Sequence record: NC_049340.1
DNA: 64,000 bases
Strand: one strand, 5' to 3'
Each line of letters begins with the position of its first letter. Positions within the stretch are counted from its first letter, which is position 1. Made by a program: the position numbers and the translations under genes. Of the stretch, positions 1-37,028 are shown piece after piece. Below the pieces are notes generated by a model, which had not been told where the DNA came from, made no database searches, and saw only the letters and a program-made list of their open reading frames with translations.

Positions 1-154
1 AACACATATAGTGTTTCCGATTTTTTATTTAATACACATTTAAGGCACTTTAAACTATATTTGATAACAATATACCATAATATTATAAAAGTTCATAAAA
101 TCACTATATATGAACTTAATTTAACAAACATAATACATATACAAAAGGAATATT

Positions 155-637
155 ATGTCGATAAAAAAACTAAAACCTAGAATGGGTAAAAAGTCTCATT
201 ATAAACAAGGGTATTATGATGTTAGAAAATCAAAAAAATATTATGGTGATACACCAGTTATTTATAGGAGTGGTTTAGAGTTTAAGTTTATGACGTGGTG
301 TGAACGTAGTCCTAGAGTATTAAAGTGGTCATCAGAACCAAACAAATCAATTAAATATACATGTCCACGAACAGGTAAGGAACGAAACTATTATATTGAT
401 TTTATAATAGAATTAGCATCAGGTGATAAATTTTTAGTTGAGGTTAAACCATTTAGTCAAATGAAAGATGCTGAGGCATTTTCAAAACATGCTAAAATGT
501 TAGGTAGATTACCAAATATTAACGAATCAAATAAAGTTGCATCAATGAATGATGCAAAGTGGAGGTATGCTAAGAAGTATGCCGAAAAACATAACATGAA
601 ATTCATAATAATAACGGAACGATTTAAATTCATATAA
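155..637 (+). CDS. gp4: Head completion nuclease (T4 gp4 / TnsA-like PD-(D/E)XK)
   Basis: YRSGLE...WSSEP...YYIDF...LVEVKP...AKWRYA...FIIITE motif series. Confidence 0.85.
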   Translation: MSIKKLKPRMGKKSHYKQGYYDVRKSKKYYGDTPVIYRSGLEFKFMTWCERSPRVLKWSSEPNKSIKYTCPRTGKERNYYIDFIIELASGDKFLVEVKPFSQMKDAEAFSKHAKMLGRLPNINESNKVASMNDAKWRYAKKYAEKHNMKFIIITERFKFI

Positions 638-646
638 TAACACAAC

Positions 647-1477
647 ATGGCAAAGCAAATAGGAAATAAAATAAAGTTTGAAAATCTAACACCTGATGAT
701 ATTGATTTTTTAAACATAATTAATGACAATGTAACATCATCAAATTCATTACCATTTGATGTACCTATTGACCAAGTATTAAGGATAACTATTCGTAGTT
801 TGAAATGGTTTTGGTATTGGTATGAAGATGCTACACAAGAATCAACCTTATACATTCCATTTACAGAAATTCAAGAAAAGCAGAAAGTTTCAAAGGCTGG
901 TAATGTAGATTTATTATTACCTGAGGGTATTGAGGGTGTTTTTGACGTAAAACCTGTTGGTGGTTCTAATTTTACATCTATTGCAAAGAGTTTAAGATAT
1001 CCTTTACTAAATGCATTAAGAAATACATATGCAAGTTCTTATGGTGGTGCTAATGGTGGTATGAGTGGATTCCGTTCACAGTATGGTCAAGGTTCATTTT
1101 CAACGGTTGATAGCACATTACAAATGTATGAATTATCACAATACAAAACTATGTCACAAAGAGGTTATAGATTCTCTTTCAATAAAAATTCAAGGATATT
1201 AAGATTGATGACAGGTAGTATTGGTGGTGGTATTGTTTGTCAAGCCTTTGAGCGGTTAGAACCGCAATTGATGTACGGTGACCAATTATTTGAGGATTAT
1301 GTTACCGCTAAGGTTGAAGAGGCGTTAGGTAAGATTGTAAGTACTTTCAATTTCGAATTACCTGGCGGTGTAACAATAAATTATGATGAGATTAAATCAA
1401 ATGGTAAGGAAAGGGCAGAAAAAATAGAAGAAGATATAAAGAACTCTAATAATACTGACCTTATGTTATCCATTTAA
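647..1477 (+). CDS. gp13: Neck protein (T4 gp13-like)
   Basis: C-terminal LPGGVTINYDEIKSNGKERAEKIEEDI motif; follows gp4. Confidence 0.75.
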   Translation: MAKQIGNKIKFENLTPDDIDFLNIINDNVTSSNSLPFDVPIDQVLRITIRSLKWFWYWYEDATQESTLYIPFTEIQEKQKVSKAGNVDLLLPEGIEGVFDVKPVGGSNFTSIAKSLRYPLLNALRNTYASSYGGANGGMSGFRSQYGQGSFSTVDSTLQMYELSQYKTMSQRGYRFSFNKNSRILRLMTGSIGGGIVCQAFERLEPQLMYGDQLFEDYVTAKVEEALGKIVSTFNFELPGGVTINYDEIKSNGKERAEKIEEDIKNSNNTDLMLSI

Positions 1478-1514
1478 ATAACATATACATATAGTATAAA
1501 TAAACACATATACA

Positions 1515-4500
1515 ATGTTTAAAAATTCAATAGAACAACAACTAGAAAGTACTGGCAGACAACATGAGAATGCTGTTGCTTTATCAAATGCATATTTAAA
1601 GGCTTTAACCACCCAAGAGGAAGAGGTTAGTGTTGATTTAAAAAATGCTGATGGAACAACATCTAATGTTAGGGTAAAAACAAACTCTAAGATTTGGGCA
1701 GAATTAGAGCGACTTAGAGCCACAGTATTAAATATAAGCGGTATTTCAAAGGACAGACAAAATACATTGGTATCTTTAGATGATAAAACATCTTTTAGAG
1801 AGATATTTGTACAGAATTTTGACCGTGCATACTCAAAACCTAAAGCATCTGAAATTACATTAGATAGTGGAATAAAGATTGAAACAAACGGTATTGTTGA
1901 ATCATTACTTTCACCATTAACTACTGTTGAGGCTAGTTTGGCACAAAGATTTTTAGAAGCTAATGAAGTTGTTGTGACAAAATTCATAATAACTGCTGGC
2001 GATTTCACTAAATTTACTGATGGTGAAACATATTCAAGTGTACGACAAAAATTATTAAATACTGCTAATGGTTATAAATATAAAACAGTTGAGTATCTTT
2101 TAGATACTGTAAAGAGAAACACTAGATTCTATGGTGAATTTAATGTGGTTTCACAAGTTTCTAATACGGATGGTACTGTTACAGCTGTTTTAAATACATT
2201 AAAGTATTCAGATAAGTTAAATTCTGTTGAGAACTCACGAGAGTTGGTTGTTGGTAATAAATTGGTTTCTACTGATGGTACTTCTAGATGGAATGTAACA
2301 GCAATTGATATACCTAATAATAAAATAACGATAAAGGTTGAGGCTGGTTATAGTCCTCTACAAACTGGTACAGGAACATTATCAATTTTATCTGTTGATA
2401 CTAACGAAACACGAAAGGTTCGTATACCAGTAAAGTTAAAGGAGAAGTCTATAATGTTTATTTCACCAGTAAATAAACACACGAATGCTGAGTCACCATA
2501 TTCAGAAGCAAAATTATTTGATTCTAGTAAATATACTGTTAGTGTTGGAAATAACACTTTCACATTTGATGAGTATTTTGCATCAAAGGTTGCAGACCTT
2601 GGAAGTTATTTTGAATCAATCGTTCGTGAATCAGCTATACCAGCATCATTAGGAGAGAAACCATTAAAGCCAACATTAGATGTAAATACATTTAATATTG
2701 TACAAATTAACCGACACTTAACAAATACACCCGAATCAGATAAATTAAAGAAATTAAATTCTGATTATAAAAGAACTGATAGTGAAATATCTGTTTTAAA
2801 CAATAAGATTTCTGAAATAAATGCTAGGATTGCAAAGGGTAATTATTCATCAAGTGCATTAAAGGCAAAAGATGAAGCAACACTATCAACATTAATAAAA
2901 CTAAGGTTGAGAAGTCTGCATATTTATCATCATTGGTAACTGATATTAATACAGCATTATCAAACACTACAGCACGAAACATAACACCAAAATATCGTGT
3001 TCGTGGTTTTTGGGATGTTCAAAGTGATATTGCATCTAGTGTTACGAATCCACAAAAGATTGTACAATATGAGGTAAGATATCGTTATGCATCAAATAAC
3101 AAGACAACGACTGATGCAGACCAAATGACATATACTGATAAAAATAGTAATACAGTAAATGCAATATTTAGTCCATGGTCTTATGTTAAGAGTGAACCAA
3201 GGAAAAAAGAAAAAACTACAACTGGTGAGTTTGTGTGGTCAAATAATGATGTAGCCAATGCGGATGAGGTTAATATGAACCAATTGGATATTCCTATTCA
3301 ATATGGTGAGAATGTTGAGTTACAAATTAGAGCAATATCAGAAGCTGGTTATCCAACTGCACCAATTACATCAGATTGGTCTGATTTAGTTAGTGTAAAA
3401 TTTCCACAGGAATTATTACAAGAATCAACAGTAGCTACAATTGCTAGGGAAAATTCTGAGGCTTTACGAAAAGTTGAGTTACAAGAGGAATTTAAGAACC
3501 AAGGTATCACCGAACATATTAGTACAGCAATTAGAGAGCGTGGTAATTATTATGCACACGACACCAAACAAATTGCATCAGGATTTAGAACAACTGAACA
3601 AACCATAATTTCATTATTTGATTTCTTAACAAGTCAAAAACGGAAATGGACAGATTACGTTCAATTGTTGATAGAAGATATGCTATTATCACACCACAAA
3701 TTGTAGATGGTTCTGATAAAGTATATGAAGTATCTAAATTCTCTAAGATTAAATTATTCGCTGGATATTATACGGATGCTGTTAATTTATCGGATGTATC
3801 AAATAATGGTACGATAGTAACAAAGGTATTTTATTTAAGATTTAATAATAAGAATGCACAGACTGTTGATATGTTAAGTATTAGTCCAGGTACTTTGACT
3901 GAGGCTACTGCTAATGTTAATTACTCGGATGTTCCTGTTTCGATTCTTGGGAATGATGGTAAATCATTTAAACAATTAAACGGACAAATATTCTATGCAC
4001 GTTCAAAGGATATAAGTGGTAGTACTGACTTTTTTGTAACAGATACAACACAATCAGTAACAACAATACCATCATCGGATATTGATAACACCGCAGTACA
4101 AGCATCTAAAGATGTTGTGCATTTACAAGGTGGTTCTTTTGAGGTTGTGAAGTTAACAAACAATGCATCATTAGATAATTATGTTGCAGTATCAACTTCA
4201 CATCCAGCATACATAGACTATACGAGGAATAATGCAAATACTGCAAATTTATTAGCTGAATTTGAAAGAGTGAAGCAATATAATGAAACATTAAAAAAGC
4301 CTACAGCACAAAATAAATTTGACACAAACAAAGCTGTTGAATATATACAAAATGATAAGTATTTAGTAGGTAAAAATAGTGTAGGTGCAAGGCTATTCAC
4401 ACAATTTAATCAAATGTCGAGTGTTCAAGTAAATGGAATTGATACATCAAGTGCATTACAAATACACACAGGCGATTCAAATTCTGTTATAGTACCTTTG

Positions 4501-4746
4501 GTATTTCAGTATAGAATGACTGATGCTGTTGGTCATGTTGATGGAACAACATCAAAAACCGTTAACTCGAATTTCGAATATACTAAGTCTATTGGTATTG
4601 ATTTAATTGTGCAGGGTGAGACATTTAAATTTGATGTTGAAGTTAGTGCTAAATTTAGACCGACATCAATTTCGAATAATAATTTAGGTATACAAACTAC
4701 CAAAAATATAGAAACCACAACACAAGCAACAACAAAGATTGATTAA
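1515..4746 (+). CDS. Large putative virion protein (~1077 aa if joined), split in three by two -1 indels; central FN3-like segment
   Basis: ORFs 1515-2939, 2933-3706 and 3646-4746 join by adding one A at the A4 run (2897-2900) and one at the A5 run (3636-3640); YEVRYRY...VELQIRAISEAG...SDWS resembles fibronectin type III. Confidence 0.6.
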
Positions 4747-4779
4747 TCCAATCTTTGTTGTTTATGTTAAAATAGATAT

Positions 4780-7700
4780 ATGAAAACACAAGGAACAGTA
4801 GAATCTACATCATCAATTAAGTACGGTAAACAGATTTTCCAAAATGCTCAGTTCAATAATACAGTATCAGCAAATGCTGTTACTGTTGATTTTGATAAGG
4901 GTAATATACAATCTATTGATTTATCTGCATCAACTGGTGATGTTACAATTAATTTCACAAATCAAAAGATAGGTACTTATATTTTATCTATCAAGCAACA
5001 CGCAACCACAGTACGAAATGTTATATTTTCGCCTACTGTTTCAACCTCATGGAATATGATGTCAATTGGTGTGTCTAATATTGTACCTATTGTAATACAT
5101 TATGATGGAAGTAATTTTATTTCTAATTCAACAACTGGTGAAATAAAACCATTTAATGCATTATCTAACTACGGTATAGGTGCTAATGTAATACACAATG
5201 GAAATTTATATACATCAACTGCACAAGTTAATTCAGGTGCATTTAATAATGCAAATTGGGCATCTTTAGGAACTGCTGTTGCAAGTCAAACAACATATAC
5301 AGATACACATTCAACAGGACAAACAAACACACAATCGGTTATTGATTATATTTTAACAAGACCTAACATTGTATTAAAGAAATATGCATCAATTGATGCA
5401 ATGCTTGTTGAACAGGGAACACATACAGACTCAACATTATGTTTGGTTAGTAATTCAACAACTGGAAACATAACTGATGAAACACGTGTTACTGGTGGGT
5501 ATGCATACTATATAAAAAATAGAACTGGTAGTGGAATTGATAAATACGATGTATTAGGTCAATTGAGCGCACCAGCAACTAGAACAACATTTGATAATAG
5601 TATCAGTACATTACCAAACAACCCAACAAACGTACAGGTTGCATTACAAGAATTAGCTAAGTTGATTGATGATGTTAGTGGTGGTCAGAAGTTAATTCAT
5701 ACATGGAACGCTGAAACAAATGATAGATTTGTTGCTAATAATGCATTTTATGATTCATTAACAAAAAATCCTATAATTAATGTTTGGGATGCTGGTACTA
5801 AGAAAGCAACAGTTACTGGAACTGAATTAGCAAATACTATTGTAGTTGGTATGAAAGTTCGTATACAACATCCAACCACAAACGCAAAGATATTAGATAC
5901 AACCATTACAGCAATTACTGTTAGTGGTGCTAATAAAGACATTACGTTGGCTGATGGTACAGGTGTTATACAAGGACATAGAATTGTAACGGCTGATAAA
6001 AAAGCTAATGTAGGTGATTATCTTTATGTAAATACAGTACATGCGACAACAAACACAACAGTAGATGGTAATAGTACATGGACAGTTGGTGATACGATAC
6101 AATCTAATGGTACAATATGGTTAAGAATTGCATATGTTAAACCAACATTAAACGCATCACAAGTAACTTATGATTCTAGTGGAAATAACTTAATATCTAC
6201 CAATACACAAACTGCAATTACTGAGGTTAATACTAAGGTTGATACTAAATTAGGTGATGCGCCAAGTGATGGTAAACAATATGCTAGAAAGAATGCATTA
6301 TGGCAGGAAATTGATACATCATTGCCAACATTATCACAAGTATTAACTGCTGGGAATACTGCTGGGAATAAAAGTATTTCACAATTAGCATCATTGGCTA
6401 CTCGTAATGTTAGTGGTAATTATATTGCAATGAATCCAACGGATATAACTGTATATAGTACTGGTAGAAATACTAGATACCGTAATGGAGAGATAATTTA
6501 TGCCACTAGTGGTACAGATACAGTAAAACTAGCATTTCCAACAGCAACCATGCAAGAAACACCAGCTGGTGCTAAAACAATATCATTTAAGTATGAAACT
6601 GGTACGGTTGCTCTTATAGCAGATTTGGATGCTCGTGTACCATATACAGGTGGTACAGGACATGTTGATTTAGGTGGTTATCATTTAAAATCAGGGTCAC
6701 AATTTACCACAACAAACAAAGCAAGACATAGAATATATTTTCAACAATCAGGTGGTGACCAAGCATATGTTCTAAAACGTCAAGAGGAATATTGGACTGG
6801 TGGTTCATGGAGTTCAAGTACTGATGGATATGGTGTTGGTGCTAGTGCTTTAGCAAGTAATACTGGTAGATATTCTAATGCCTTTGGTGCATATGCTTTA
6901 CAAAACAATACAGGACAATATGTTGATGCATTTGGTTATAATGCTGGTAAAAACAACACAGGTGTATATTCACAATTCGTTGGCACAGGTGCAGGAACAG
7001 GAAATAGTGGGTCGAATGTTGTTGCCATGGGTTATAATGCTGGGGCATCCAATACTGGGGTAACTACAACAATAGTTGGATATTCCGCTGGACAATCAAA
7101 TACTGGTTCTAGTTCTGTTATTATAGGGGGAGGTTCTGGCATAAATAACATGGGGAATAGTACCGTGTTAATTGGCACACTTGCTGGTATGAGTAATACC
7201 CAGCACAATGTTACAGTTATAGGCAATAACTCAGGACAATCAAATACTGGTTCAGCTTTAACTGCATTTGGTAGAAGTGCTGGTGCATCTAATTCAGGTA
7301 ACGAAGCAATTTCAATAGGTTACCAAGCTGGTATGAGTAATACTGGTAACTACGGAATTAGTATAGGTAAATCTGCTGGACAATCAAACTCAGGACAGTA
7401 TACAGTAATGGCTGGTCACCAAGCTGGTATGAGTAATACTGGTAACTACGGAATTGGTGTAGGTTCTAACGCATTGTCTAATAATACACAATCATATGTT
7501 ATTGGTTTTGGTCATTTCGCTATGGCACAAAATACTGGTAAACATTCAAGTGCATTTGGACACCAAGCTGGACTAAGAAATACTGGACATTACTCGCATG
7601 GTATTGGTAGTTATGCAATAACTGATAATACATCACCATATGTTATTGGTATAGGATATTATGCATTGGGTTATAGTAAGAATACTATTGGTATGTTAAC

Positions 7701-8724: not shown

Positions 8725-8727
8725 AAT

Positions 8728-8761
8728 AAACAAACTGTGTGAATCAACACACAGTTTGTTT
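8728..8761. terminator. 14-bp inverted repeat after the fibre gene
   Basis: AAACAAACTGTGTG-aatcaa-CACACAGTTTGTTT. Confidence 0.65.
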
Positions 8762-8803
8762 TATACTAATTGAAAGGAAAGGAAATAATTAAATATAAAC
8801 AAG

Positions 8804-9307
8804 ATGACAAAATATGTAATTACTAACAAGGATGTTGATTATACATTCGATAACCAACCATGTAAACTTAGAAGAAGTATTACAGAGGTTTGTAAAATAA
8901 ATGGTGAAAAATTCATTAAAATTTTAACAGAGCGTGTAACATTTGTTGAAGAAACTGTTATTGTTGAAGAATATCCACCAATATTTGACCACGAAACTGG
9001 TGAAGTTACCTATAAAGAACCAAAAACAGAACAAAGAATATTTCTTAAAGTATTATCACAAAAAGATGAGGTTAGAACTAGGATTTTAACAAAGGCGGAG
9101 GTTGATGCTGTATATAATATGGTTAAATCTCAGGTATTATTTGGAGAGTCTTTTTATGACTTTGAAGATAATTTAGAAACTGCATCATTAATTGCACTAA
9201 CTAAATTGGATAAGCCATATAACACACTGCCATCTGATTGGGAAATATATTCAGAAACACCACAAGAAGACAATCAACCAAACTACAACGAAATGGAGTT
9301 TGGTTGA
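8804..9307 (+). CDS. Hypothetical protein (possibly fibre-associated)
   Basis: 167-aa ORF directly after the fibre gene. Confidence 0.6.
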   Translation: MTKYVITNKDVDYTFDNQPCKLRRSITEVCKINGEKFIKILTERVTFVEETVIVEEYPPIFDHETGEVTYKEPKTEQRIFLKVLSQKDEVRTRILTKAEVDAVYNMVKSQVLFGESFYDFEDNLETASLIALTKLDKPYNTLPSDWEIYSETPQEDNQPNYNEMEFG

Positions 9308-9332
9308 AGTGAAAAAAATAATAACGTATACT

Positions 9333-9361
9333 AAAAATCGAGGCGATGCCTCGGAATTTTT
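9333..9361 (+). terminator. Intrinsic terminator-like hairpin
   Basis: CGAGGC-gat-GCCTCG followed by a T run. Confidence 0.5.
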
Positions 9362-9392
9362 AGTGTTCATACATATTAAAAAGCTGAATTAT

Positions 9393-11561: not shown

Positions 11562-11591
11562 CAATGTGTGTAAATTTACACACACATTGTT
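11560..11591. terminator. 12-bp inverted repeat
   Basis: AACAATGTGTGT-aaatttac-ACACACATTGTT. Confidence 0.6.
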
Positions 11592-11627
11592 TAATATAAG
11601 TTGAGTAAATTATAAAATTATTAAAAA

Positions 11628-14544: not shown

Positions 14545-14699
14545 AATTATTTTCACCATATGTTTTTTAAAAGACTTTATATACAAAATATATAATCACA
14601 CCACACATATACAGAACGTCGCTTAAATCACACACCACATACCAAATAAAGCATATTTTAATATACACATACATACTATAAAGATAATACTATACACGT

Positions 14700-18874: not shown

Positions 18875-18930
18875 TTTTGGTATCAATACATACTTTATAA
18901 TAATATTTATAGATTTAAACACAAATAACT

Positions 18931-22760: not shown

Positions 22761-23303
22761 ATGTTAAATCACGTAAGAAATTCACAAGCTGGTCGAAGAA
22801 ATTACGAAATGGTTACAGATGCTTTATATAAGGTAACATTTATACCACCTGCTGGTGTAGCTGGTGCTGAAATATTAACCGAGCAATGTATATCAATTAC
22901 AGGATGGAAAAGACCTGGCCCTGAGGCAGTTCAACAACAATTCAACCAAGCACGTAGAAACTACGCATCTGTAGATGTGGATAATACTCAAACACTTTCT
23001 GCTACATTTGAAATGAACTTAAATGAGGCTAATCAAAACTATGTTTATAATACAATGGTTGATTGGGCGAATTTGATTTTTAATGACCAAACTGGTGAAA
23101 GAGGTTTAAAGAAAGACTATGTTGGTACAATCATTATTGAACAACATGACCCAAAGGGTAATATCTACTGGACACGTAAATTACAAAATGCTTGGGTTAG
23201 TGGTGAGTTTGCATCTATTGGACAAAATGATGTGGCTAGTGCAGACCCTGTAAAATTCGAATGTACCATAATTGCAGATTGGTACGATGAAGAAAGAAAA
23301 TAA
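22761..23303 (+). CDS. gp19: Tail tube protein (T4 gp19-like)
   Basis: 180 aa; W.NLIFNDQTG, DYVGTIIIEQHD..G...LQNAW. Confidence 0.85.
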   Translation: MLNHVRNSQAGRRNYEMVTDALYKVTFIPPAGVAGAEILTEQCISITGWKRPGPEAVQQQFNQARRNYASVDVDNTQTLSATFEMNLNEANQNYVYNTMVDWANLIFNDQTGERGLKKDYVGTIIIEQHDPKGNIYWTRKLQNAWVSGEFASIGQNDVASADPVKFECTIIADWYDEERK

Positions 23304-23342
23304 TTAGGCGTGGTAAAGGCTCTACTAAAGTATGTAACCACG

Positions 23343-23385
23343 TAATAGAAAAAACCGAGCGTTAACGCTCGGTTTTTTTCTATTA
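23343..23385. terminator. Bidirectional terminator palindrome between the tube gene and the antisense endonuclease gene
   Basis: TAATAG-A6-CCGAGCGTTAACGCTCGG-T7-CTATTA. Confidence 0.8.
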
Positions 23386-24475
23386 TATTATTTATTTCGT
23401 TTATTAAGTTTTCCATAAATTTAGAATCTTTAGATTCATAATCATAAACTTCAAAGTAATTTTTATGATTATAATGTTCTGTTGCTAACTTTCTTTTAAC
23501 TTCATCTTTTTGTTTTGCAACATCAGTATTATGCCAATATGAACCATGATACTCTATAATTATATCATATTTTTTACAGAAAAAGTCGTAATAAAATTTC
23601 TTGTTTGTTACAATATCCGTATAACCTATAGGCACATCTAAATTAATTTCATCAAATCCATAAAATGACCCCTTTAGTTTAGGAATAATTTCAATAATAT
23701 TATCAAAGAATTTTATTGATTCTTTTGATACTGTACCATTATTTGTATTATGTAATGTTATTGGGTGCATTGTACCATATCTATCAAGATTTGTAGCTAA
23801 TACTTTTTGTTTTATTAAATGATTATGTACAGTACAAGTAACACCATATCTATCAAGATTAGTTTGTTTTATTTTATCCTTTATCTTATCTAAATGCATA
23901 TGATGTCTAACACCATATTTTTCAAAACATGTTTGTTCTATACGATTCTTTATTATTGGACTCTGTGATGGGTGTTTAACACCATAATTCAAAAGACATG
24001 TTTCTGATTTCTTTTTCTTTATACTATCCAATTTAGATACATTATCAACACCATACTTATCAATAACGGTTTTCTGATAATTGTATACTTTTAATATATT
24101 TGAACATTTTCTACAACATGTCAAAGAATTTGACATTTGTATATATTCAGAAAAACTATATTTAGATTTATTAATATCAATAACAATATTACATCCACCG
24201 CACCTAAATTCTTTAATATTATGATAAACCAATAATCCCTTTATATTAAAATCTATTTTTCGAAAATCAATATTTCTATATGATAATATTAAATTAATTA
24301 CATTTTCATACTTTAGTAATACATTTTTTGTTAATCTTTTTCTTTTTGTTAGATATGAAGAAACATACTCAATAAATTCACCATATTCTTTTATTTCACT
24401 TTCATTAAGAACTTCCCTAATATCAAGTTCATCATCAAAAGGTATATACTGTTTATAAATTTTATTTTTCGCCAT
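23362..24475 (-). mobile_element. Putative free-standing homing endonuclease: repeated (K/R)YG helical units plus C-terminal Vsr/very-short-patch-type nuclease
   Basis: KYGVDNVSKLDSIK..., NYGVKHPSQSPII..., DRYG repeats; FYYDFFCKKYDIIIEYHGSYWH; antisense to the surrounding genes; start taken at ATG 24475; stop at 23362 assumes the T7 run is really T6. Confidence 0.65.
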
Positions 24476-24503
24476 ACAATATGTATAATACACAATATTT
24501 TTC

Positions 24504-24863
24504 TTGTTATACATATATTACAAAACTTATAATTATTCAGAATTATGGAAAAAAATGAAAATAAACAAAAAGAAAATAGTTGTTTCCAAAAGGTCAAAAC
24601 AAAGAAAGAAAGTTGTTAGACAACGAAAATCTAAGAGTGAAGACCCAAATGAAAATCCACTATTATCAAGACCACCAAAAAATAGCGTAGGGTTTAACTT
24701 CCTACAAAAACGAAACGAACAGGCAAAAATACAAGCAGAAATATCAGAACAGGTACATAACGAACACGGATTAATACCCGAAAGAGATTTCAGAAATATA
24801 GAGGAAACAGATAATGCTGTTCCTAGTTTTGTTAGAGGATTAATTAATAGATACAGAAAGTAA
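24504..24863 (+). CDS. Hypothetical basic protein (true start probably further downstream)
   Basis: Open frame in the dominant orientation; K/R-rich. Confidence 0.5.
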   Translation: MLYIYYKTYNYSELWKKMKINKKKIVVSKRSKQRKKVVRQRKSKSEDPNENPLLSRPPKNSVGFNFLQKRNEQAKIQAEISEQVHNEHGLIPERDFRNIEETDNAVPSFVRGLINRYRK

Positions 24864-24864
24864 T

Positions 24865-25164: not shown

Positions 25165-25167
25165 AAA

Positions 25168-26275: not shown

Positions 26276-26315
26276 CAAAAAATGCGAGAAATTAAAAGTT
26301 TCTCGCATTTTTGTT
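26274..26315 (+). terminator. Intrinsic terminator
   Basis: A6-TGCGAGAAA-ttaaaag-TTTCTCGCA-T5. Confidence 0.75.
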
Positions 26316-26349
26316 GGTTGTACTGGATATCCACATGAATTAAGTAAAT

Positions 26350-26625: not shown

Positions 26626-26672
26626 AGTACGCTTATTTTCCATACCTATACATAAATAAAGGACATTAGACT

Positions 26673-26963: not shown

Positions 26964-27580
26964 TGGCAAGTATTAAACAATTTATAAATTTTATGAACTC
27001 AGCTACTAAATTTAAAGTAGATATACCTGAAAAGGCTGGGGTTGCACTAAGACCAATCATTGATGATATTATCTATGATATACATGAAGCAAATGAAATT
27101 GTAACAGAGCGAATATATGAGAATGTAAAAAATGCATTACATATGGAGTGTATTGATACAGCCAAGGCAATTGTTATGGATTATTCATTATGGTTAAAAT
27201 CAGATGAGCAAAACTTAAATGAGGAATTTACCGCTAATTTTGATGAGTTTTTAGTTGATGAAACTAGTATTAACGAAAGTGAAGAAATTTCAGAGGCTAG
27301 AGGACGTGTACAAACACTAAGGGGTATGGATTTAAAGAAGCGAAAAGCAAAGGCAGAAATTATGTCCAAATTAAATAAAGACCCACAGTACATACAAGCA
27401 AGTCAAAAACTTTTAATGATTGCTAATAGGGTTGCACGTAAATTAGCACGTGAGGCTGGAATTAAACCAAACCTAGTTGATGTTTCCAAAGTAATTGTTA
27501 GAAAATCAACAATAACAAAGGCACAAGAAACAAAACCGAAAAAAGAAGAACCAAAGGATAACAAAAAAGACACTCAATAA
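26963..27580 (+). CDS. Hypothetical protein, acidic middle and basic C-terminus (possible internal head protein)
   Basis: LNEE/INES/ISEA motifs, then a K/R-rich tail. Confidence 0.55.
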   Translation: MASIKQFINFMNSATKFKVDIPEKAGVALRPIIDDIIYDIHEANEIVTERIYENVKNALHMECIDTAKAIVMDYSLWLKSDEQNLNEEFTANFDEFLVDETSINESEEISEARGRVQTLRGMDLKKRKAKAEIMSKLNKDPQYIQASQKLLMIANRVARKLAREAGIKPNLVDVSKVIVRKSTITKAQETKPKKEEPKDNKKDTQ

Positions 27581-27595
27581 GAGTGTCTTTTTTGT
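27561..27595 (+). terminator. Intrinsic terminator, 15-bp stem
   Basis: ACAAAAAAGACACTC-aataa-GAGTGTCTTTTTTGT. Confidence 0.8.
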
Positions 27596-27669
27596 GTTTA
27601 TTATTACCTTTATACTATGTATGATGTTCCTAAATTACAAACATAGATACATACATAAAACACTTTTCC

Positions 27670-30320: not shown

Positions 30321-30348
30321 AAATAGGGTGCTATGCGCCCTATTTTTT
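30319..30348 (+). terminator. Intrinsic terminator
   Basis: AAAAATAGGGTG...CGCCCTATTTTTT. Confidence 0.7.
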
Positions 30349-30378
30349 GTTATGATACATAATTAAAAGAGATTACCT

Positions 30379-31098
30379 ATGTACGGAAATGTATTTTATG
30401 AACAATTAGAAATAAAAGCTGATAAACCAATAGACAAACGAATGTATATTGACAGTTTAACAGTAGCAAATTTAAAGTTATTATTTGAGGACGATGGTAA
30501 ATATAGTTTTCTAAATAATATAATCTTTAATAAGGCAGATAAAAAGTTTTATTACTTAGCTACTAGAGCAACACCAGCAGATGCGGTTGACCCAGCAAAG
30601 TGGACAGCTTTACAATCTTCTGCAAATGGTTTTGTTTTATATGCATCAGCGAACACGTATAATATTGGTGATTGTGTTTATCAAATTGATGGTGGTTCTA
30701 ATAAAAGATTTTTTATAGCAAAGGAGGCTATTGCAGTAAACGAAGCACCATTAACAACATCAGCAAAGTGGTTAGAGGTTAGTGGTAGTGGAAATAATTG
30801 GCAGAGGTATGAACATAGATTGAATCCAGCAGTACCAGCAGGTAATACAACTAGGACATTTGATGTTTCTGTTATTTCTGATTTATCGAATGGTCATAGT
30901 CCAATAGTTAAGTTTTATTGTGATAAGAATGTAAAAATTAGTGGTCAAGTTGCTTGGCAGGAAATTATACCATTCTATCAAATATTTACTGATGGTGGAG
31001 TTACAAAAATTAGAGTAACTTTTAGTGGTGATTTAACCGATATATACTATGATGGTGGTAACGCAACACAAAAAAACATAATAGCAGAAATTAGATAA
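30379..31098 (+). CDS. Putative virion protein with carbohydrate-binding-like module
   Basis: KPIDKR N-terminal motif; YASANTYNIGDCVYQ...W. Confidence 0.5.
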   Translation: MYGNVFYEQLEIKADKPIDKRMYIDSLTVANLKLLFEDDGKYSFLNNIIFNKADKKFYYLATRATPADAVDPAKWTALQSSANGFVLYASANTYNIGDCVYQIDGGSNKRFFIAKEAIAVNEAPLTTSAKWLEVSGSGNNWQRYEHRLNPAVPAGNTTRTFDVSVISDLSNGHSPIVKFYCDKNVKISGQVAWQEIIPFYQIFTDGGVTKIRVTFSGDLTDIYYDGGNATQKNIIAEIR

Positions 31099-31099
31099 T

Positions 31100-32104
31100 A
31101 TGGGAGATTTTGCAAAAGACGTGGATTTCCACGGAAATAAAATAAAAAGAGCAAAGGTAGATATACCTAATAGGAATAGTATTGCTAATGATGATGCAAT
31201 TGATAAACAATATGTTGATGATGTTGATAAGTATACAACAACAACCTCATCAAATACTGGTGTTCAGCCGACAAATATCGTTACTGATAGAACATTAATA
31301 CACAATAAACCATCACGTGAATTATTTGATTTAATATTTTATCCTATAATAAAGGCTAAATATATTAAACCAACATTTACTGCTACTACAAGATTTGTAC
31401 AAGTTGGAACAAACACAGCAGTAACCCCTGAGGTTGGTATGTTAGTTGATGTTAAGTTTGATATAACAACAACATTAAATGACTCACAAGGATTAGATGC
31501 TAATAAATATCAACTATCAGGTAGTGGTATAACAGGAACTATAAGTGGAATTGATGATGGTGTTGCTGGATATACTATATCAAATTATAGAATACAAGAA
31601 AACAACACTTGGCAGTTAACACAGAATTATAAACAAGCAAATGTTAAAAATGATTCTAGAGGTAATGCAGATGCAACTGGTGACCCAACAGCACCGTATT
31701 TTAATGCAAGTACACAAACACAAACAATAAATAATGTTGTTAAGTGGGTTTGGTATGGTGTTGCATTGAATGGTGATATTTCATCACCATCAAATACGAC
31801 AATAGGTACATTATTGTCTAGTGGTAAGAAGCATGGTGATGTACCAACAGAGGCAAAAGTTAGCGTACCTAGTGGTGGTACACAAACAATATATTTCGCT
31901 ATACCAATTAATGGTATATCAATACCACAATTAACAGCAACAAAGGATGGTTCTATGCCAGTAACAGCATCCTTTACTGGTACTTTATTAACTGATGTAC
32001 CTGATGCAACCAATAGCGGAAATACTAAAAACTATGCATTATATAGAGCAACAAATGGTAATGGATTTGCCCAAGTTGCTGAGTATGTATTCAAAACACA
32101 ATAA
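31100..32104 (+). CDS. Putative virion structural protein (Thr/Asn-rich, beta-rich)
   Basis: 334-aa ORF in an operon with 30379 and 32107. Confidence 0.5.
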   Translation: MGDFAKDVDFHGNKIKRAKVDIPNRNSIANDDAIDKQYVDDVDKYTTTTSSNTGVQPTNIVTDRTLIHNKPSRELFDLIFYPIIKAKYIKPTFTATTRFVQVGTNTAVTPEVGMLVDVKFDITTTLNDSQGLDANKYQLSGSGITGTISGIDDGVAGYTISNYRIQENNTWQLTQNYKQANVKNDSRGNADATGDPTAPYFNASTQTQTINNVVKWVWYGVALNGDISSPSNTTIGTLLSSGKKHGDVPTEAKVSVPSGGTQTIYFAIPINGISIPQLTATKDGSMPVTASFTGTLLTDVPDATNSGNTKNYALYRATNGNGFAQVAEYVFKTQ

Positions 32105-32106
32105 AC

Positions 32107-32589
32107 ATGGCAACAGGAAATTCAACGGTAGCTAGATTTGACTACCCATTAATATTTAATATAACACAACCAGCACCTATTGATTCAAGGTTCACCATTA
32201 GTTCTGTTTCAAATTTAGCAACAGAATTGCCTAGTGGTGTTCGATATAAGGGATTGATAGTATGGGTTGAGGATGTTAAGACATTCTATTACTTTAAAGA
32301 TGGTATTTTGGATACTAACTTTATTGTATTTACTTTAGGGTCTGCTGGGGTTACAAAATTCATTTATAACGCACCTGACCCTATAACAAATGGAGAATTA
32401 TTCAACCACGGATTAAACACAGAAGAATTTACCATAGGTTTTATTTTAAATAACAAACCAGTAATAATAGACTATGAGTTATTGCCGTATGATGCATCCA
32501 ATCCAACCCATCACTTGAATAATATCAAACTAATGCCACCTATAGGATACACTATTCCAATGGGATTAAAGATTATTATGATGTATTAA
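32107..32589 (+). CDS. Putative virion protein
   Basis: APIDSR...RYKGLIVWVED motif, related to the N-terminus of 30379. Confidence 0.5.
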   Translation: MATGNSTVARFDYPLIFNITQPAPIDSRFTISSVSNLATELPSGVRYKGLIVWVEDVKTFYYFKDGILDTNFIVFTLGSAGVTKFIYNAPDPITNGELFNHGLNTEEFTIGFILNNKPVIIDYELLPYDASNPTHHLNNIKLMPPIGYTIPMGLKIIMMY

Positions 32590-32623
32590 TATTGTTTTGC
32601 AATGATTCTATAAAAAACATTGC

Positions 32624-32926
32624 ATGAAGTATATTAAATTTTTAGAGTGCGAGGATTTCGCACATGACTTTGAAATGTTTTGTTATTGTGATGTAACAAT
32701 GATAAAAACATTCGACCAAGATGATTTTCATCAACCTTGTGAAGAACTTATAGATACACTAGTTGAGTTCTTCATAAAAAGTTGTGATATTAATATCACA
32801 ACAGTATTCAACTATCCATTATCATATATTGTTAATTTTGGTGATAAACAGGTTGAGTACTATAACACACAAACTATGTTTACTGATTTATTATTTTTTG
32901 TTTATGGACACACAACCAAATTTTAA
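32624..32926 (+). CDS. Hypothetical protein
   Basis: 100-aa ORF. Confidence 0.5.
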   Translation: MKYIKFLECEDFAHDFEMFCYCDVTMIKTFDQDDFHQPCEELIDTLVEFFIKSCDINITTVFNYPLSYIVNFGDKQVEYYNTQTMFTDLLFFVYGHTTKF

Positions 32927-33302
32927 AGTTGTTTTACCATCAAAAGACACATTACGACAACTAATTATGATGGTTGTCGTAATGTGTCTTTGTCTTTTCT
33001 TGTATGACAACTACTTCAACACAGATTCAAATATTGATGATACATATCAAAAAGCCAATGATATATTATCGGAAAGAATAAAGGAACTAGAGCGTGATAT
33101 AACCTCACGAAAGGAATTGGAACAGCAACACAGAGATAGTATTATAATATTGCAGAACCAATTAGAAATATCTAAGATAAAACAATACAAACTAAAAAAG
33201 CAATTACGTGATGCGAAACACAAAATTAAATATTCGAATGATTCTGTTAACGTTGTTCACTACATTAACTATATTAACCAGTATAGGACAAACAACAATT
33301 AA
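32904..33302 (+). CDS. Membrane-anchored coiled-coil protein (i-spanin-like architecture)
   Basis: N-terminal hydrophobic LIMMVVVMCLCLFLY, then heptad-rich helix. Confidence 0.45.
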   Translation: MDTQPNFKVVLPSKDTLRQLIMMVVVMCLCLFLYDNYFNTDSNIDDTYQKANDILSERIKELERDITSRKELEQQHRDSIIILQNQLEISKIKQYKLKKQLRDAKHKIKYSNDSVNVVHYINYINQYRTNNN

Positions 33303-33654
33303 ATTTCCACCACTTAAACAAATAACCGAGAGTACATACGAAATTCATATAAGTGATATTAGAACAGCTAATATGATTTTCTTGGAACATGATGCATATA
33401 GTAAAGAGCTTGTTGAGTCAAAAAAAGAAATTGACTTACATATATTAAAATTCAATAATTTAGTTGAGGTTAATAAGTCATTAGAAAGTGAGATAAAGGA
33501 TTTGAATGCAATCCTATTACTTAAAGATGATAAAATTAATCTAGACAATACATACTATACGTCTAAATTAAAAAGTATAAAACGTCAACGAAATAAAGCC
33601 TATATAATAGGTGGTGTTGGTGTAATACTTGGAATAATTCTAGCAGTTAATTAA
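33238..33654 (+). CDS. Signal-peptide + coiled-coil + C-terminal TM protein
   Basis: MILLTLFTTLTILTSIG...; C-terminal IIGGVGVILGIILAVN; overlaps the previous gene. Confidence 0.45.
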   Translation: MILLTLFTTLTILTSIGQTTIKFPPLKQITESTYEIHISDIRTANMIFLEHDAYSKELVESKKEIDLHILKFNNLVEVNKSLESEIKDLNAILLLKDDKINLDNTYYTSKLKSIKRQRNKAYIIGGVGVILGIILAVN

Positions 33655-33666
33655 AATACAATAATA

Positions 33667-34032
33667 TTGGATACAAAATTTATTAGTTTAAGACAATTCG
33701 CATATGAATCATTAGGTATGCAAATCAAACCAAATCAAACAGACTTTGAGGTTAATTTAAATCTATCTAGTGCATATGGTACAAGATTGGAGAAAATATT
33801 GAATGAGAAATTCAACATCATTGACTTTAACTGTAATAGTAATAATATAATTCGTTCGATACATTGCATTACTGAGAGTGGTTATGTTGATATTATTGTA
33901 TCTAATGATATTATGGAGTCTAAAAATGTATTAAAAATTGTTTCTAACGAAAACAATAAATTAACGGAAAGTGTTGTTAAATATAATACACTAAATACAT
34001 TTGATGAACAAATAAAGGAAATACTAAAGTAA
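33667..34032 (+). CDS. Hypothetical protein (TTG start)
   Basis: 121-aa ORF. Confidence 0.5.
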   Translation: MDTKFISLRQFAYESLGMQIKPNQTDFEVNLNLSSAYGTRLEKILNEKFNIIDFNCNSNNIIRSIHCITESGYVDIIVSNDIMESKNVLKIVSNENNKLTESVVKYNTLNTFDEQIKEILK

Positions 34033-34037
34033 ATAAA

Positions 34038-34565
34038 ATGAGTGATACTAACTTTGATTCTTACATATTCAGACAACTAGATTTTGATAGAGTGGATACG
34101 AATGTATATGATTATGATACTTTACTAAAAAGTACATTATTACACTATGCTAATGCGTATTCAGCTAATATAATTTCTGATGAATATATAAGTAATATAA
34201 ACAAAGTTAAATGGTATTGTTTTGAATGTAAAAAGGAAATTGATGTAGATGTATCAGGATTAGTGATTGATACAAAAACATTTAATTCGAGAAAATTATT
34301 TTGTGATGTACACAAACCACCAACCAAGTCAAATATCTTTAAGCAAAATTATCTATTTAATAGATATTTGATTTCTTTTCATTCGTACCTAAAGAAAATA
34401 ATTATTAATAATTCTAAAACAAAACATCTAAGTGCATGGAAAGAGTTGCAACAATTGGAATTGATGTCTCAATCAATTCAACAGGAATCACTATTATCAT
34501 ACCAAAAACGGAAGAATCCGAGAAAAAAACTCTTTACTTTCAAATCTGCCCTCAAAACAAAATAG
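34038..34565 (+). CDS. Hypothetical protein with CxxC...CxxH putative Zn finger
   Basis: CFECKK...FCDVH. Confidence 0.5.
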   Translation: MSDTNFDSYIFRQLDFDRVDTNVYDYDTLLKSTLLHYANAYSANIISDEYISNINKVKWYCFECKKEIDVDVSGLVIDTKTFNSRKLFCDVHKPPTKSNIFKQNYLFNRYLISFHSYLKKIIINNSKTKHLSAWKELQQLELMSQSIQQESLLSYQKRKNPRKKLFTFKSALKTK

Positions 34566-35092
34566 CAACAGTATCACCAAACGTAACACTTATAACATAC
34601 AAGAAAACATATTCAGACTATGATGAGTATACAGCTGTTGATTTACATAAAGTAATATCTGCTGAGAATTTAGCCAAGACAGTACATAAATTAATGGAGC
34701 GTGTTTCTAAACAATATAAAGTAGATTATTTTGATGCTAGGCAAGAGGGTTCTGTGATGAGTATGTCTTTTAAAAAGCAATTAAGTAAGATAAACGACCT
34801 AACAACATATAACGTTGCTGTAAAAAGGATGTTATTAGGTACTAAATTGGTTAAATCTATTTCAATAGTATCACCAAACTCATTAAAGAAATATGCAACA
34901 GGAAAGGGTAATTGCAAAAAAGAATTGGTATTAGAAACATTCCTAAAAGAACATCCTGAATATAAAGTTGTGATAAGTAAGAGAACTGGAAAACCATCTT
35001 CAAAGGATGATGATATTGCAGATTCACACTACTTAGCTAAGGCTGATATACCGAAAGATAACAAATTAATAAAATCAATACATAAAAAGTAA
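34436..35092 (+). CDS. ruvC: RuvC-like Holliday junction resolvase
   Basis: IGIDVSINSTG, QEG, GKGNCKKELV, DDIADS acidic tetrad pattern. Confidence 0.8.
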   Translation: MERVATIGIDVSINSTGITIIIPKTEESEKKTLYFQICPQNKIATVSPNVTLITYKKTYSDYDEYTAVDLHKVISAENLAKTVHKLMERVSKQYKVDYFDARQEGSVMSMSFKKQLSKINDLTTYNVAVKRMLLGTKLVKSISIVSPNSLKKYATGKGNCKKELVLETFLKEHPEYKVVISKRTGKPSSKDDDIADSHYLAKADIPKDNKLIKSIHKK

Positions 35093-35102
35093 ATAATAGA
35101 TT

Positions 35103-35801
35103 ATGACTGAAAATACAGAACCTAGAGAGGCAATTAACCAAAATGGTGAAATGATATTAGTATCACCAGCAGATATAAATTGTAAAAAATTATATGATGT
35201 TACTGATACAAAAAAACAATTACTTGAAGATGTTTCTGATAGTGAATCAAAAATTAAAGCATTAGAATCAAAAATTGGAAAAGCTGAACAAGGTTTAGTA
35301 GCATTGAAAGAATCATTGTCTACTGAAATGAAGACTATGGCTGATAAGAAGCAAGAAATATTAGACTTAAAACCTGTTGAGGATAAATTAAGTTTAGAAT
35401 TGGTTGATGTGGTATTCGCAAAAGATAAAATTTTACCATTAGTTAAAAAGTCTTATGAAGTTTCTAAGAAATTAAATGGTAGAGTAGCATCAATTACATA
35501 TAAAAAATTAAAAGAATTAGAAGAATTACTAGTAAGTGAGCCAACAAAGGAACAATTATTAGAGAAATCAACTGAAATTAGTGAATTAGTTGGTAAAATT
35601 CGTCTTGTTGGAACTATAGCACAAGCAGAAAGTGGTAAGGAATTAGTATCTGTTATCAAAGATATTCATGGTACATTCCTTAGAGATAATTATAAACCTG
35701 TTTTGTGGAAATCAAAAGTTGATTTAGATGTTGTACCTGTACCACCAAATGGTGATGGTTCAAATAGTGAAGTGGTAGACACACTAGTAACTAGTACATA
35801 A
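35103..35801 (+). CDS. Hypothetical coiled-coil protein
   Basis: 232-aa E/K/L-rich ORF. Confidence 0.6.
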   Translation: MTENTEPREAINQNGEMILVSPADINCKKLYDVTDTKKQLLEDVSDSESKIKALESKIGKAEQGLVALKESLSTEMKTMADKKQEILDLKPVEDKLSLELVDVVFAKDKILPLVKKSYEVSKKLNGRVASITYKKLKELEELLVSEPTKEQLLEKSTEISELVGKIRLVGTIAQAESGKELVSVIKDIHGTFLRDNYKPVLWKSKVDLDVVPVPPNGDGSNSEVVDTLVTST

Positions 35802-35810
35802 TAACAAATA

Positions 35811-35847
35811 AAAACAAGACTTACATCTAGTTTGTAAGTCTTGTTTT
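35811..35847 (+). terminator. Intrinsic terminator, 15-bp stem
   Basis: AAAACAAGACTTACA-tctagtt-TGTAAGTCTTGTTTT. Confidence 0.75.
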
Positions 35848-35936
35848 GTGAATTTAAAGTGAGTTTGTTTAATACTATAGAAATTAAAATAAGTAATAAT
35901 AAGTAAATTTAAAAAGTAAATTTAAAAAGTAAAATT

Positions 35937-36959
35937 ATGAGTACAGAAATGAATGTAATTGACAGTATGTTTGGAGTTTTCGGACAAAAAGTAGAAGACC
36001 AACAAAACCCAGCAGAGGAACAAGGTGGAGGTAGTAAAATCGCTAAATTTAAACCTGACCCAAAGAAAACACCTAAGAAAAAATGGTTAGGAGTTGTTAA
36101 GTTTTTACCAAATTTAGAAGACATTTCAAAACCTATGTTGAGTAAAACAACTTATTGGTTAACTGACCCAACTACTAACAAAGGAGTTCTTTATGAATCA
36201 CCAAAATCATTAGGTAAATATGAGGATTGCGTTGTTGCATCTAAATATTGGGACTGGACAAACAGTGGTGATGCTAGATTAGAAAAGTTAGCAAAAGACA
36301 AATTAAAGTACAACCGTCACAATTATGTTTTAATCCAAATCATTCGTGATTTCCAAGATGAGAAAAACAACGGAAAAATCATGTTATGGGATTTACCAGT
36401 AAAAATCCGTAAAATGATTGACAAAAAGCGTTTCCCAGCTGATGAGGATATTGACTTAGGTGAAGTTGCACACAACCCATTCGACCCATTTAATGGATTA
36501 ACAATGACATTAAAGATTGGTTTAAATGACTTCGGACGTGTTTGGGATGATTGTTCATGGTCTAAAGATAACATTCCTACAACAATGATTTTAGAGGGTG
36601 AACAAAAGCAAGTAATTTTAAGTTCTGATGCAAATGAATTAAGACAACAACAACAAAAAGCACTAGAAACAATTGTTAATAGTGGTGTTAAATTAAGTGA
36701 TGTTGCATATCAAGCACCAAGTGATGAAACAATCACAAAAGTACAAAACATCATGGCATTAGTTTCTGGTGAACCTGTAAATGCACAAGCCAGTCAACTT
36801 GTTGCTGAACAAAAACAACCTGTTGCTGAACAAAAACAACCTGTTGCTGAACAAAAACAACCTGTTGCTGAACAAAAACAACCTGTTGCTGAACAAGCAC
36901 AAACAAATCAAACATCTGATGATTTAGATGATGATTTTATGAAAGAAGTAATGGGTTAA
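35937..36959 (+). CDS. gp32: Single-stranded DNA-binding protein (T4 gp32-like)
   Basis: KFLP, NYVLIQIIRD...NNGKIMLW...KI, PFDPFNG...LKI; acidic tail DDLDDDF. Confidence 0.85.
   Translation: MSTEMNVIDSMFGVFGQKVEDQQNPAEEQGGGSKIAKFKPDPKKTPKKKWLGVVKFLPNLEDISKPMLSKTTYWLTDPTTNKGVLYESPKSLGKYEDCVVASKYWDWTNSGDARLEKLAKDKLKYNRHNYVLIQIIRDFQDEKNNGKIMLWDLPVKIRKMIDKKRFPADEDIDLGEVAHNPFDPFNGLTMTLKIGLNDFGRVWDDCSWSKDNIPTTMILEGEQKQVILSSDANELRQQQQKALETIVNSGVKLSDVAYQAPSDETITKVQNIMALVSGEPVNAQASQLVAEQKQPVAEQKQPVAEQKQPVAEQKQPVAEQAQTNQTSDDLDDDFMKEVMG
36800..36896 (+). repeat. Perfect 21-nt tandem repeat, 4.6 copies (encodes PVAEQKQ), in the SSB linker
   Basis: TGTTGCTGAACAAAAACAACC units start at 36800, 36821, 36842, 36863; partial unit at 36884. 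Confidence 0.95.
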
Positions 36960-36978
36960 AAACAACTGAATTACAAAC

Positions 36979-37012
36979 AAAAAATCCATCATTTTTAATG
37001 ATGGATTTTTTT
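36979..37012 (+). terminator. Intrinsic terminator
   Basis: AAAAAATCCATCATT-ttt-AATGATGGATTTTTT. Confidence 0.75.
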
Positions 37013-37028
37013 CTAATACATATTTAAG

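Follow-up and report, generated by a model that had tools for sequence, protein, structure and literature searches.

Does the heptamer ATACATA, which stands in front of structural operons of Tenacibaculum phage PTm1, act as the late promoter of this phage, and which protein would read it? The window analysed here is the whole stretch of 64,000 nucleotides (nt) that forms bases 1-64000 of the PTm1 genome (AP019524.1 / NC_049340.1; 224,680 bp). PTm1 is a T4-related jumbo phage of the genus Shirahamavirus, its host is Tenacibaculum maritimum (Bacteroidota), and it has been proposed for phage therapy in aquaculture. In T4, the late promoters (TATAAATA, −13 to −6) are recognised by gp55, which works together with gp33 and the gp45 sliding clamp. 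A preliminary description of the window had proposed that NATACATA, i.e. ATACATA preceded by any base, is a variant of this promoter recognised by a late sigma factor of altered specificity. Those of its predictions that are computationally testable (placement, gene class, minus-strand use, conservation and the sigma gene) all gave positive results. Judging from its sequence context, ATACATA is very probably a promoter, and it is probably the late promoter of PTm1, read by the gp55-family product of open reading frame (ORF) 243.

Nearly all PTm1 genes are carried by the plus strand and about 85% of the genome is annotated as "hypothetical", an annotation that is improved by promoter classes and a sigma gene; ATACATA would mark late genes among the many ORFs without known function. 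T4-type core genes are present, including those for head completion, neck, sheath, baseplate wedge and hub, portal, and prohead protease/scaffold, together with a gp2-like end protector, a gp23-type capsid protein, a UvsW-type helicase, a clamp loader and RNase H. The relatives found with the portal protein (26-36% identity) are phage pT24, Sphingomonas phage PAU, the Lak megaphages and Chryseobacterium phages. The three promoter classes and the putative late sigma gene described below provide, for a jumbo phage that infects the fish pathogen T. maritimum, a first in silico map of transcription. PTm1 has been assigned to jumbo-phage "group 2.2", in which sigma factors are present and an own RNA polymerase is absent (Iyer et al., PMC7824862).

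Placement of ATACATA and the genes behind it

All the NATACATA copies listed in the preliminary description were found where it had placed them, including the minus-strand copy at 24487-24480. Gene calls made here for the whole genome served as the basis for the coding/non-coding and start-codon tests. Counted over the whole window, ATACATA shows no excess (33 copies, with 38 ± 6 in dinucleotide shuffles), so that only its placement and strand carry a signal. A plus-strand start follows within 60 nt for 12 of the 27 plus-strand copies in the window (7% expected, p = 1e-7) and for 40 of 80 genome-wide (8% expected, p = 7e-23). The genome-wide search on upstream regions that had been recommended in that description ranked exact ATACATA first of all 7-mers for placement before starts. 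The recommended comparison of intergenic with coding DNA gave 42 copies in plus-strand non-coding DNA, where 9.7 are expected from an order-2 Markov model of non-coding DNA, and only 35 in coding DNA, which is about ten-fold larger; among non-coding 7-mers only the host −7 box ATATTTG ranks higher. All 21 single-mismatch variants are near expectation in non-coding DNA, none being clearly enriched, and the reverse complement is also at expectation there (7 copies against 5.2). The canonical T4 box was tried as a PTm1 signal and rejected, as it is not clearly enriched (ATAAATA, 34 against 21.4; TATAAAT, 19 against 18.2). Altogether, ATACATA sits in front of about 45 gene starts genome-wide.

It was considered whether ATACATA is merely an AT-rich word that is common in AT-rich intergenic DNA. 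The window total, no higher than that of the shuffles, and the roughly ten non-coding copies expected by chance would suit such a compositional artefact, but the fourfold excess was obtained over a model trained on the non-coding DNA itself, it is not clearly shared by the one-mismatch neighbours or the reverse complement, the word is the top-ranked one upstream of starts, and it is kept at orthologous gaps in relatives (see below). This explanation is already refuted and has practically no chance of being correct.

The anatomy of the element was analysed in 45 sites, with positions counted from the first A of ATACATA as 0. The base preceding the heptamer is unconstrained, which corresponds to the N of the element as first described. 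TT is found at −12/−11 in 28/45 sites, and in 17/32 of the sites without an upstream terminator (13% background, p = 6e-8). Position +8 is always A or T, and A occurs at +11 and at +13 in 35/45 sites each. No information content was detected around −35 in the 45 sites. The fuller element is thus most likely formed by TT, 10 nt, ATACATA and then an A-rich start region, as far as can be judged from the sequence alone. The distance from the end of the motif to the start codon is 2-50 nt, with a median of 24. A ribosome-binding element would keep a less variable distance. A strict terminator hairpin with its T-run lies within 60 nt upstream of 13/45 sites, compared with 7.8% of random intergenic positions, which bears out the earlier remark that the motif often comes just after a terminator. 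ATACATA is often the sole conserved feature between the terminator T-run and the next start (e.g. 37016, 30355).

The class of gene served by the element was analysed using the genes with an informative annotation, each of which was assigned the nearest upstream same-strand motif among three intergenic classes, namely ATACATA, the host-type promoter and the motif CATTGTT-WW-ATACA. ATACATA was the nearest motif for 14/14 annotated virion and lysis genes and for only 9/35 DNA/nucleotide-metabolism genes (Fisher p = 1.2e-6). The 14 genes are those for the gp4-like, neck, gp10-like, large terminase, sheath, baseplate subunit, wedge, hub, second neck, gp2-like, portal, protease/scaffold, major capsid and amidase proteins.

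The other two classes differ from ATACATA in sequence and in the genes that follow. The primary sigma factor of Bacteroidota recognises promoters with TTTG at −33 and TAnnTTTG at −7. The host-type promoter word TATATTTG is present in 38 non-coding copies where 3 are expected, and a looser version, TATNTTTG, gives 45 intergenic sites; these usually have TTTG about 19 nt upstream, in the −33/−7 geometry of Bacteroidota. They are mostly located before short hypothetical genes at 55-124 and 134-157 kb and likely represent the early class. The third motif, CATTGTT-WW-ATACA, with 15 non-coding copies against 3.2 expected, precedes the genes for ribonucleotide reductase beta, the clamp loader and PAPS reductase, the gene after DNA polymerase and others, and is a candidate middle class. 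The genomic distributions of ATACATA and host-type sites differ from each other (chi-square p = 8e-4), and the first downstream gene is longer at ATACATA sites (median 207 against 89 amino acids). Both contrasts are what one would expect if the three classes were early, middle and late ones.

An independent check of the orientation of the motif is possible in the few units that PTm1 transcribes from the minus strand. Four correctly oriented minus-strand copies head such units, at 165144 (15 nt before the unit with the baseplate hub/lysozyme gene), 209540 (22 nt before ORF-293), 151095 (4 nt before ORF-205) and 24480. The last one (24480-24487) had been noticed in front of an antisense ORF, and it is indeed oriented towards it, 4 nt before an in-frame ATG.

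Conservation was assessed in contigs of relatives reached through metagenomic homologues of ORF-243; PTm5, 99.9% identical to PTm1, was uninformative. Samples that contain such relatives are SRR28262571, DRR438457, ERR13731076, SRR29457774 and GCA_050043615.1. In five of these contigs (L010, L030, L033, L034 and L035) ATACATA is kept in the gap in front of the ORF-242 homologue; ORF-242 immediately precedes ORF-243 in PTm1. The flanks of this gap have diverged, the gp55-like proteins of these five relatives are 62-37% identical to that of PTm1, and a T-tract lies 10-13 nt upstream of the conserved ATACATA. In L010 the motif is also kept before the ORF-248 homologue. Taking these contigs together, a gene begins no more than 70 nt downstream of 8/11 plus-strand ATACATA copies (p = 2e-7). 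Searches of IMG/VR and the JGI metagenomes with the portal protein returned only relatives at about 34-36% identity, and in one such contig (L008, 34% portal identity) no ATACATA was present at promoter positions. In pT24 (30% portal identity), ATACATA occurs in 30 forward and 25 reverse copies with no enrichment upstream of genes, and it is absent among the enriched upstream words of that phage. The word ACAAATA was considered as a pT24 promoter and rejected, as its position, 1-15 nt from start codons, suggests a feature of the leader. The pT24 genome (LC168164.1) also carries a gp55-family gene (e.g. 148402-148761, matching the family profile at E = 6e-31) as well as host-type TATATTTG promoters (28 copies against 2.4 expected).

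ORF-243, a gp55-family protein

The preliminary description had called for a search for the gp55 homologue, and a single gene was found, ORF-243 (172965-173327, outside the window; L007:1390-1752), which encodes 120 amino acids and was deposited as hypothetical. The model phrog_234 (T4 late sigma) gave one weak match against the genome, at 173076-173246 (E = 0.006), inside this ORF. A profile search showed that ORF-243 belongs to a family of at least 534 metagenome proteins of about 115-125 amino acids. When a 63-member profile of this family was compared with the PDB, the best match was T4 gp55 (7d7c chain F, E = 1.3e-7, gp55 residues 5-123), followed by SigK and region-2 chains of extracytoplasmic function (ECF) sigma factors, with cellular sigma factors being marginal (E of 0.03 or weaker). 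Individually, 60/63 family members match phrog_234 "late sigma transcription factor", with a best E-value of 6e-21.

The AlphaFold model of ORF-243 (mean confidence score, pLDDT, of 82) contains four helices between residues 16 and 104, followed by an unstructured 16-residue tail. Its highest template modelling (TM) score, 0.69, was obtained with T4 gp55 (root mean square deviation of 3.3 Å over 109 columns), and the other top structural neighbours are sigma region-2 domains. Foldseek E-values are all above 0.001 for this small helical domain, so the argument from the fold rests on the TM-score and on which chains rank first. Besides gp55, the best matches of the model are sigma region-2 domains in complex with non-template −10 DNA, as in the region 2/ECF type of −10 recognition through base flipping (e.g. 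sigmaE, PDB 5or5, 4lup); unlike ECF sigma factors, the ORF-243 system lacks region 4 and −35 recognition. The C-terminal tail is hydrophobic and conserved among close relatives (D-F-S-Y-S-x-I-F), and from its sequence it might be a clamp-binding motif.

The link between ORF-243 and gp55 is made only by the family profile and not by single-sequence comparison. ORF-243 and T4 gp55 could not be aligned by BLASTP, the T4 gp55 and gp45 proteins had no match when searched directly against the genome, and an enolase match obtained in a single-sequence PDB search was discarded as spurious. No other gp55-family gene is present in the genome, and the models phrog_12791, Sigma70_r2 and Sigma70_r4 did not match it. 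The T4 gene 55 lies beside the gp46/47 exonuclease genes; the genes adjoining the gp46/47-like exonuclease of PTm1 gave no sigma match. Regarding an RNA polymerase encoded by the phage itself, no match to the Rpb2 (beta-type) domain was found in the genome, and the T7-type RNA polymerase model was also silent, as it was in all control genomes, hence that result is uninformative.

The co-activators of T4 late transcription were searched for as well. No match to gp33 (phrog_254) was found in the PTm1 genome at E ≤ 10, its proteins being very divergent, and the gp45-type clamp models (phrog_223, PF02916) were equally negative against this very divergent genome. PHROG scans of ten candidate genes revealed neither a clamp nor gp33. 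A sliding clamp probably exists in PTm1 in an unrecognised form, because a clamp-loader subunit is annotated at 191071-192039. With gp33 and gp45 undetected, the T4 activation mechanism is not established in PTm1. Orthologues of gp33 have been reported generally in the phage group of PTm1 (Iyer et al., PMC7824862).

Recognition of the element

In the mechanism proposed here, early genes would be read by the host main sigma factor from the host-type TTTG/TATATTTG promoters. The phage would then make ORF-243, a sigma region-2 domain with a short conserved hydrophobic tail, which would bind the host core RNA polymerase and recognise NATACATA (ATACATA) as a −10-like box on the non-template strand. 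By analogy with T4 numbering this box would span −12 to −6, with C for A at −9; the transcripts of virion, packaging and lysis operons, on both strands, would begin about 6 nt downstream. The analysis itself demonstrates the specificity, placement and orientation of the motif, its link to late-type genes, its retention in relatives, and the presence and fold of a gp55-family protein; ORF-243 as the reader, the start site and the late timing are the steps that we infer.

Compared with T4, the likeness is considerable. As in T4, the element is a lone, short, A/T-rich −10-like box without a −35 element, it shares 6/7 bases with ATAAATA, it is placed before virion, packaging and lysis genes and a uvsW-like helicase gene on either strand, and the genome encodes a gp55-family sigma region-2 protein. 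Unlike T4, PTm1 has C for A at −9 and an additional conserved TT 10 nt upstream of the box, its sigma factor has 120 amino acids instead of the 185 of gp55 and lacks the helix-loop-helix, homologues of gp33 and gp45 were not detected by profile searches, and the host is a member of the Bacteroidota with very different promoters of its own. In gp55 this helix-loop-helix (including R114) follows region 2 and is needed for open-complex formation. Host-type promoters and ATACATA are both intergenic and gene-oriented in PTm1; they differ in sequence and geometry, the ATACATA sites lacking the −7/−33 pair, and the host-type class is mostly found before short hypothetical genes rather than virion genes. 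About 50 late promoters of T4 adhere tightly to TATAAATA, the commonest variant being A at −13 (PMC2988020). The late box of T4 spans −13 to −6 and is shared by phages KVP40, 44RR and S-PM2; at −13 it is degenerate in most T4 relatives, as it is in PTm1 (PMC1524935).

There is a precedent for a T4-related phage with a late box off the consensus at one strongly determining position and a diverged gp55, namely Aeromonas phage Aeh1, with the box CTAAATA (Nolan et al. 2006, PMC1524935). Like the PTm1 element, the Aeh1 box was found in silico upstream of late-gene orthologues (PMC1524935). The change is at −12 in Aeh1 and at −9 in PTm1, and Aeh1 is a much closer relative of T4 with a full-length gp55. 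A box changed at −9, an upstream TT and a 120-residue sigma factor without the helix-loop-helix were not found described in the literature searched, nor was ATACATA found there in connection with a phage late promoter; the original description of PTm1 (Kawato et al., Arch Virol) lay outside that search. The PTm1 system is most likely a natural variant of the well-known T4 late system and not a new kind. If this reading is true, PTm1 illustrates the working of a T4-type late switch with the RNA polymerase of a Bacteroidota host that uses very different promoters itself.

The altered base falls at a position of known contacts. Three bases of the T4 open complex are flipped into pockets of gp55: A-12 stacks on Y97, A-8 is hydrogen-bonded to T99, and A-9 is held in a shallow pocket formed by N13 and H95 (PMC7892883). 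On T4 numbering, ATACATA retains A-12 and A-8 and is changed only at −9, to C. This C may be a modified base; two thymidylate-synthase/hydroxymethylase-like genes are annotated in PTm1. In the profile alignment, the residues of the −12/−8 pockets keep their character in ORF-243 (Y97 to F87, T99 to T89), and those of the −9 pocket are changed (N13 to S16, H95 to F85). The phenylalanine at the H95 position is invariant in 65/65 family members, including that of pT24, where ATACATA is not enriched, and at the N13 position S, N, E and P are all found among relatives with a conserved ATACATA; the altered base is therefore not assignable to particular residues. A simple residue-to-base code for the A-to-C change was accordingly rejected, as the pocket residues do not track the motif across relatives. 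From the sequence comparison, the pocket changes are consistent with the altered specificity proposed in the preliminary description and are not proof of it. This natural variant, at a base flipped by T4 gp55, makes the recognition code of a minimal sigma family testable with the 534 relatives.

Besides these two pocket positions, several observations weigh against ATACATA as a late promoter read by ORF-243. The ORF-243 gene is inside an ATACATA-headed block without a clear promoter of an earlier class of its own, the protein ends at residue 120 without the helix-loop-helix that follows region 2 in gp55, and both the gp33 and the clamp searches described above were negative. ATACATA is the nearest signal for the 9/35 annotated DNA-metabolism genes already mentioned. 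Four copies are only 2-6 nt from the called start codon; for two of them (69477, 130450) the deposited start is later. Three copies (40904, 50811, 85094) precede terminator-like hairpins within about 20 nt; the first two had been set aside in the preliminary description as misfits, and the hairpins it reported are there. With 42 non-coding copies, of which chance alone would account for about 10, a few misfits are unsurprising; these three may be non-functional or may give short or attenuated transcripts.

ATACATA could also be a promoter read by something other than ORF-243, either a host main or alternative sigma factor with a phage activator, or a divergent phage factor. In T4, MotA and AsiA redirect the host sigma factor, and in PTm1 the motif CATTGTTwwATACA, which shares the ATACA core and precedes DNA-metabolism genes, hints at different upstream partners. 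The TT at −12/−11 is foreign to T4 late promoters, and the undetected gp33 and gp45 homologues and the pocket residues that fail to track the motif would be understandable in the same way. Nevertheless, the box is unlike the −7 element TAnnTTTG of Bacteroidota, which is used separately about 45 times in this genome, and it differs from the gp55 box of T4 at only 1/7 positions. Moreover, ORF-243 is the only sigma-like gene found, and all the relatives that keep the motif carry its homologue beside a motif-bearing gap. Another reader is hence unlikely.

An action of the motif in RNA, as an endonuclease processing site or as a stability or translation-enhancing element in the 5' untranslated region of polycistronic transcripts, would explain its strand specificity, its position in 5' leaders 2-50 nt before start codons and the A-rich stretch that follows. 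Bacteroidota are not known to make classical use of Shine-Dalgarno sequences, and the ACAAATA word of pT24, 1-15 nt before many starts, has a similar leader-like appearance. However, 13/45 copies follow closely on strong terminators, at places that call for a new promoter and offer no other conserved element; the distance to the start (median 24, range 2-50) is broad, unlike the fixed spacing of ribosome binding; recognition at the level of DNA would suit the conserved TT 10 nt upstream and the single base by which the motif departs from the T4 late box; and the motif separates genes by functional class. This explanation is very unlikely.

Returning to ORF-243 as the reader, a broader version of the proposal would hold for a clade of Bacteroidota jumbo phages, made up of PTm1 and its metagenomic relatives, in which a gp55-type sigma factor of 120 amino acids without the helix-loop-helix reads TT-N10-ATACATA, maybe without gp33 or a clamp, and CATTGTT plus the ATACA core serves a middle class. 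We put this forward tentatively, as conceivable rather than likely. If true, it would represent a simpler or differently wired T4 late system, with a natural specificity variant at the flipped-base pocket.

Sites in the window and minor observations

The following plus-strand copies in the window stand shortly before genes. The copy AATACATA at 132-139 is located 15 nt before the head-completion (gp4-like) gene at 155, and TATACATA at 1484-1491 comes directly after the neck-protein gene, 23 nt before ORF-003 (1515). A terminator hairpin precedes the CATACATA copy at 9368-9375, which is followed after 17 nt by the annotated start (9393) of a gene whose product has a Gp10_C baseplate domain. Another CATACATA copy (14668-14675) is found 24 nt before ORF-012 (14700), at the head of the large-terminase operon, and AATACATA at 18885-18892 is 38 nt before the tail-sheath gene (18931). 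Further copies are TATACATA at 26647-26654, 18 nt before ORF-025 (26673), two overlapping ones (GATACATA and CATACATA) at 27646-27657, 16 and 12 nt before ORF-027 (27670), and GATACATA at 30354-30361, after a terminator hairpin and 17 nt before ORF-029 (30379). The copy AATACATA at 37015-37022 directly follows a terminator T-run and is separated by 6 nt from the DNA helicase (UvsW-like) gene (37029); judging from this spacing, transcription from it would give a leaderless or near-leaderless mRNA.

Two plus-strand copies that had not been listed before are possible sites. One of them (AATACATA, 35077-35084) lies within the last codons of ORF-037, 18 nt before ORF-038 (35103), and the other (GATACATA, 53602-53609) in the 3' end of an AAA-ATPase gene, 15 nt before ORF-061 (53625). 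As for the misfits of the window, TATACATA at 40904-40911 is placed between the stop codon of ORF-044 and its terminator hairpin, and AATACATA at 50811-50818 is followed by a terminator hairpin, then by a host-type TATATTTG promoter (50881) and then by ORF-057. A promoter-like motif followed by a terminator-like hairpin within about 20 nt was observed at 40905, 50812, 85094 and 82115; these may be chance copies, attenuated starts or 5' stem-loops.

Several copies form divergent back-to-back pairs about 20-25 nt apart: 24480(−)/24509(+), 27616(−)/27647(+), 209540(−)/209566(+) and 183821(−)/183828(+). In the first pair, the plus-strand copy (TATACATA, 24508-24515) is 39 nt before an ATG at 24555. 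The deposited TTG start of ORF-020 (24504) overlaps this motif; it is probably too far upstream, the ATG at 24555 being likelier. The minus-strand copy (TATACATA, 24480-24487) faces a minus-strand ORF of 449 codons (23165-24514) that belongs to Pfam family DUF7487 (E = 7e-22) and is unannotated in the GenBank record, where 23304-24503 is empty; its start is likely the ATG 4 nt after the motif. In the second pair, the minus-strand copy at 27616-27623, missed in the preliminary description, has no minus-strand gene downstream and points into the terminator of the upstream plus-strand gene.

Host-type promoter sites are located in the window at 56, 50881, 55971, 56306 and 57415, and beyond it, for example, at 64969, 67625, 69939, 151486 and 157206. 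Sites of the motif CATTGTT-WW-ATACA are found at 11585, 38551, 40274 and 48714 in the window, and at 82115, 89449, 104209, 105671, 114789, 161521, 166679, 189287, 191031 and 201200 beyond it. The ATACA core is common to this motif and to the late box, and three sites carry both; the relative L010 has an ATTGTT-WW-ATCA version. Several host-type promoters share a near-identical leader, formed by GTCAAAC, an A-rich run and GAGATA, about 13-25 nt before the start codon. It was observed at 64976, 69951, 70270, 148352, 151493, 154967 and 157218, and represents a conserved 5' leader of presumed early genes, which may serve as a target in translation or regulation.

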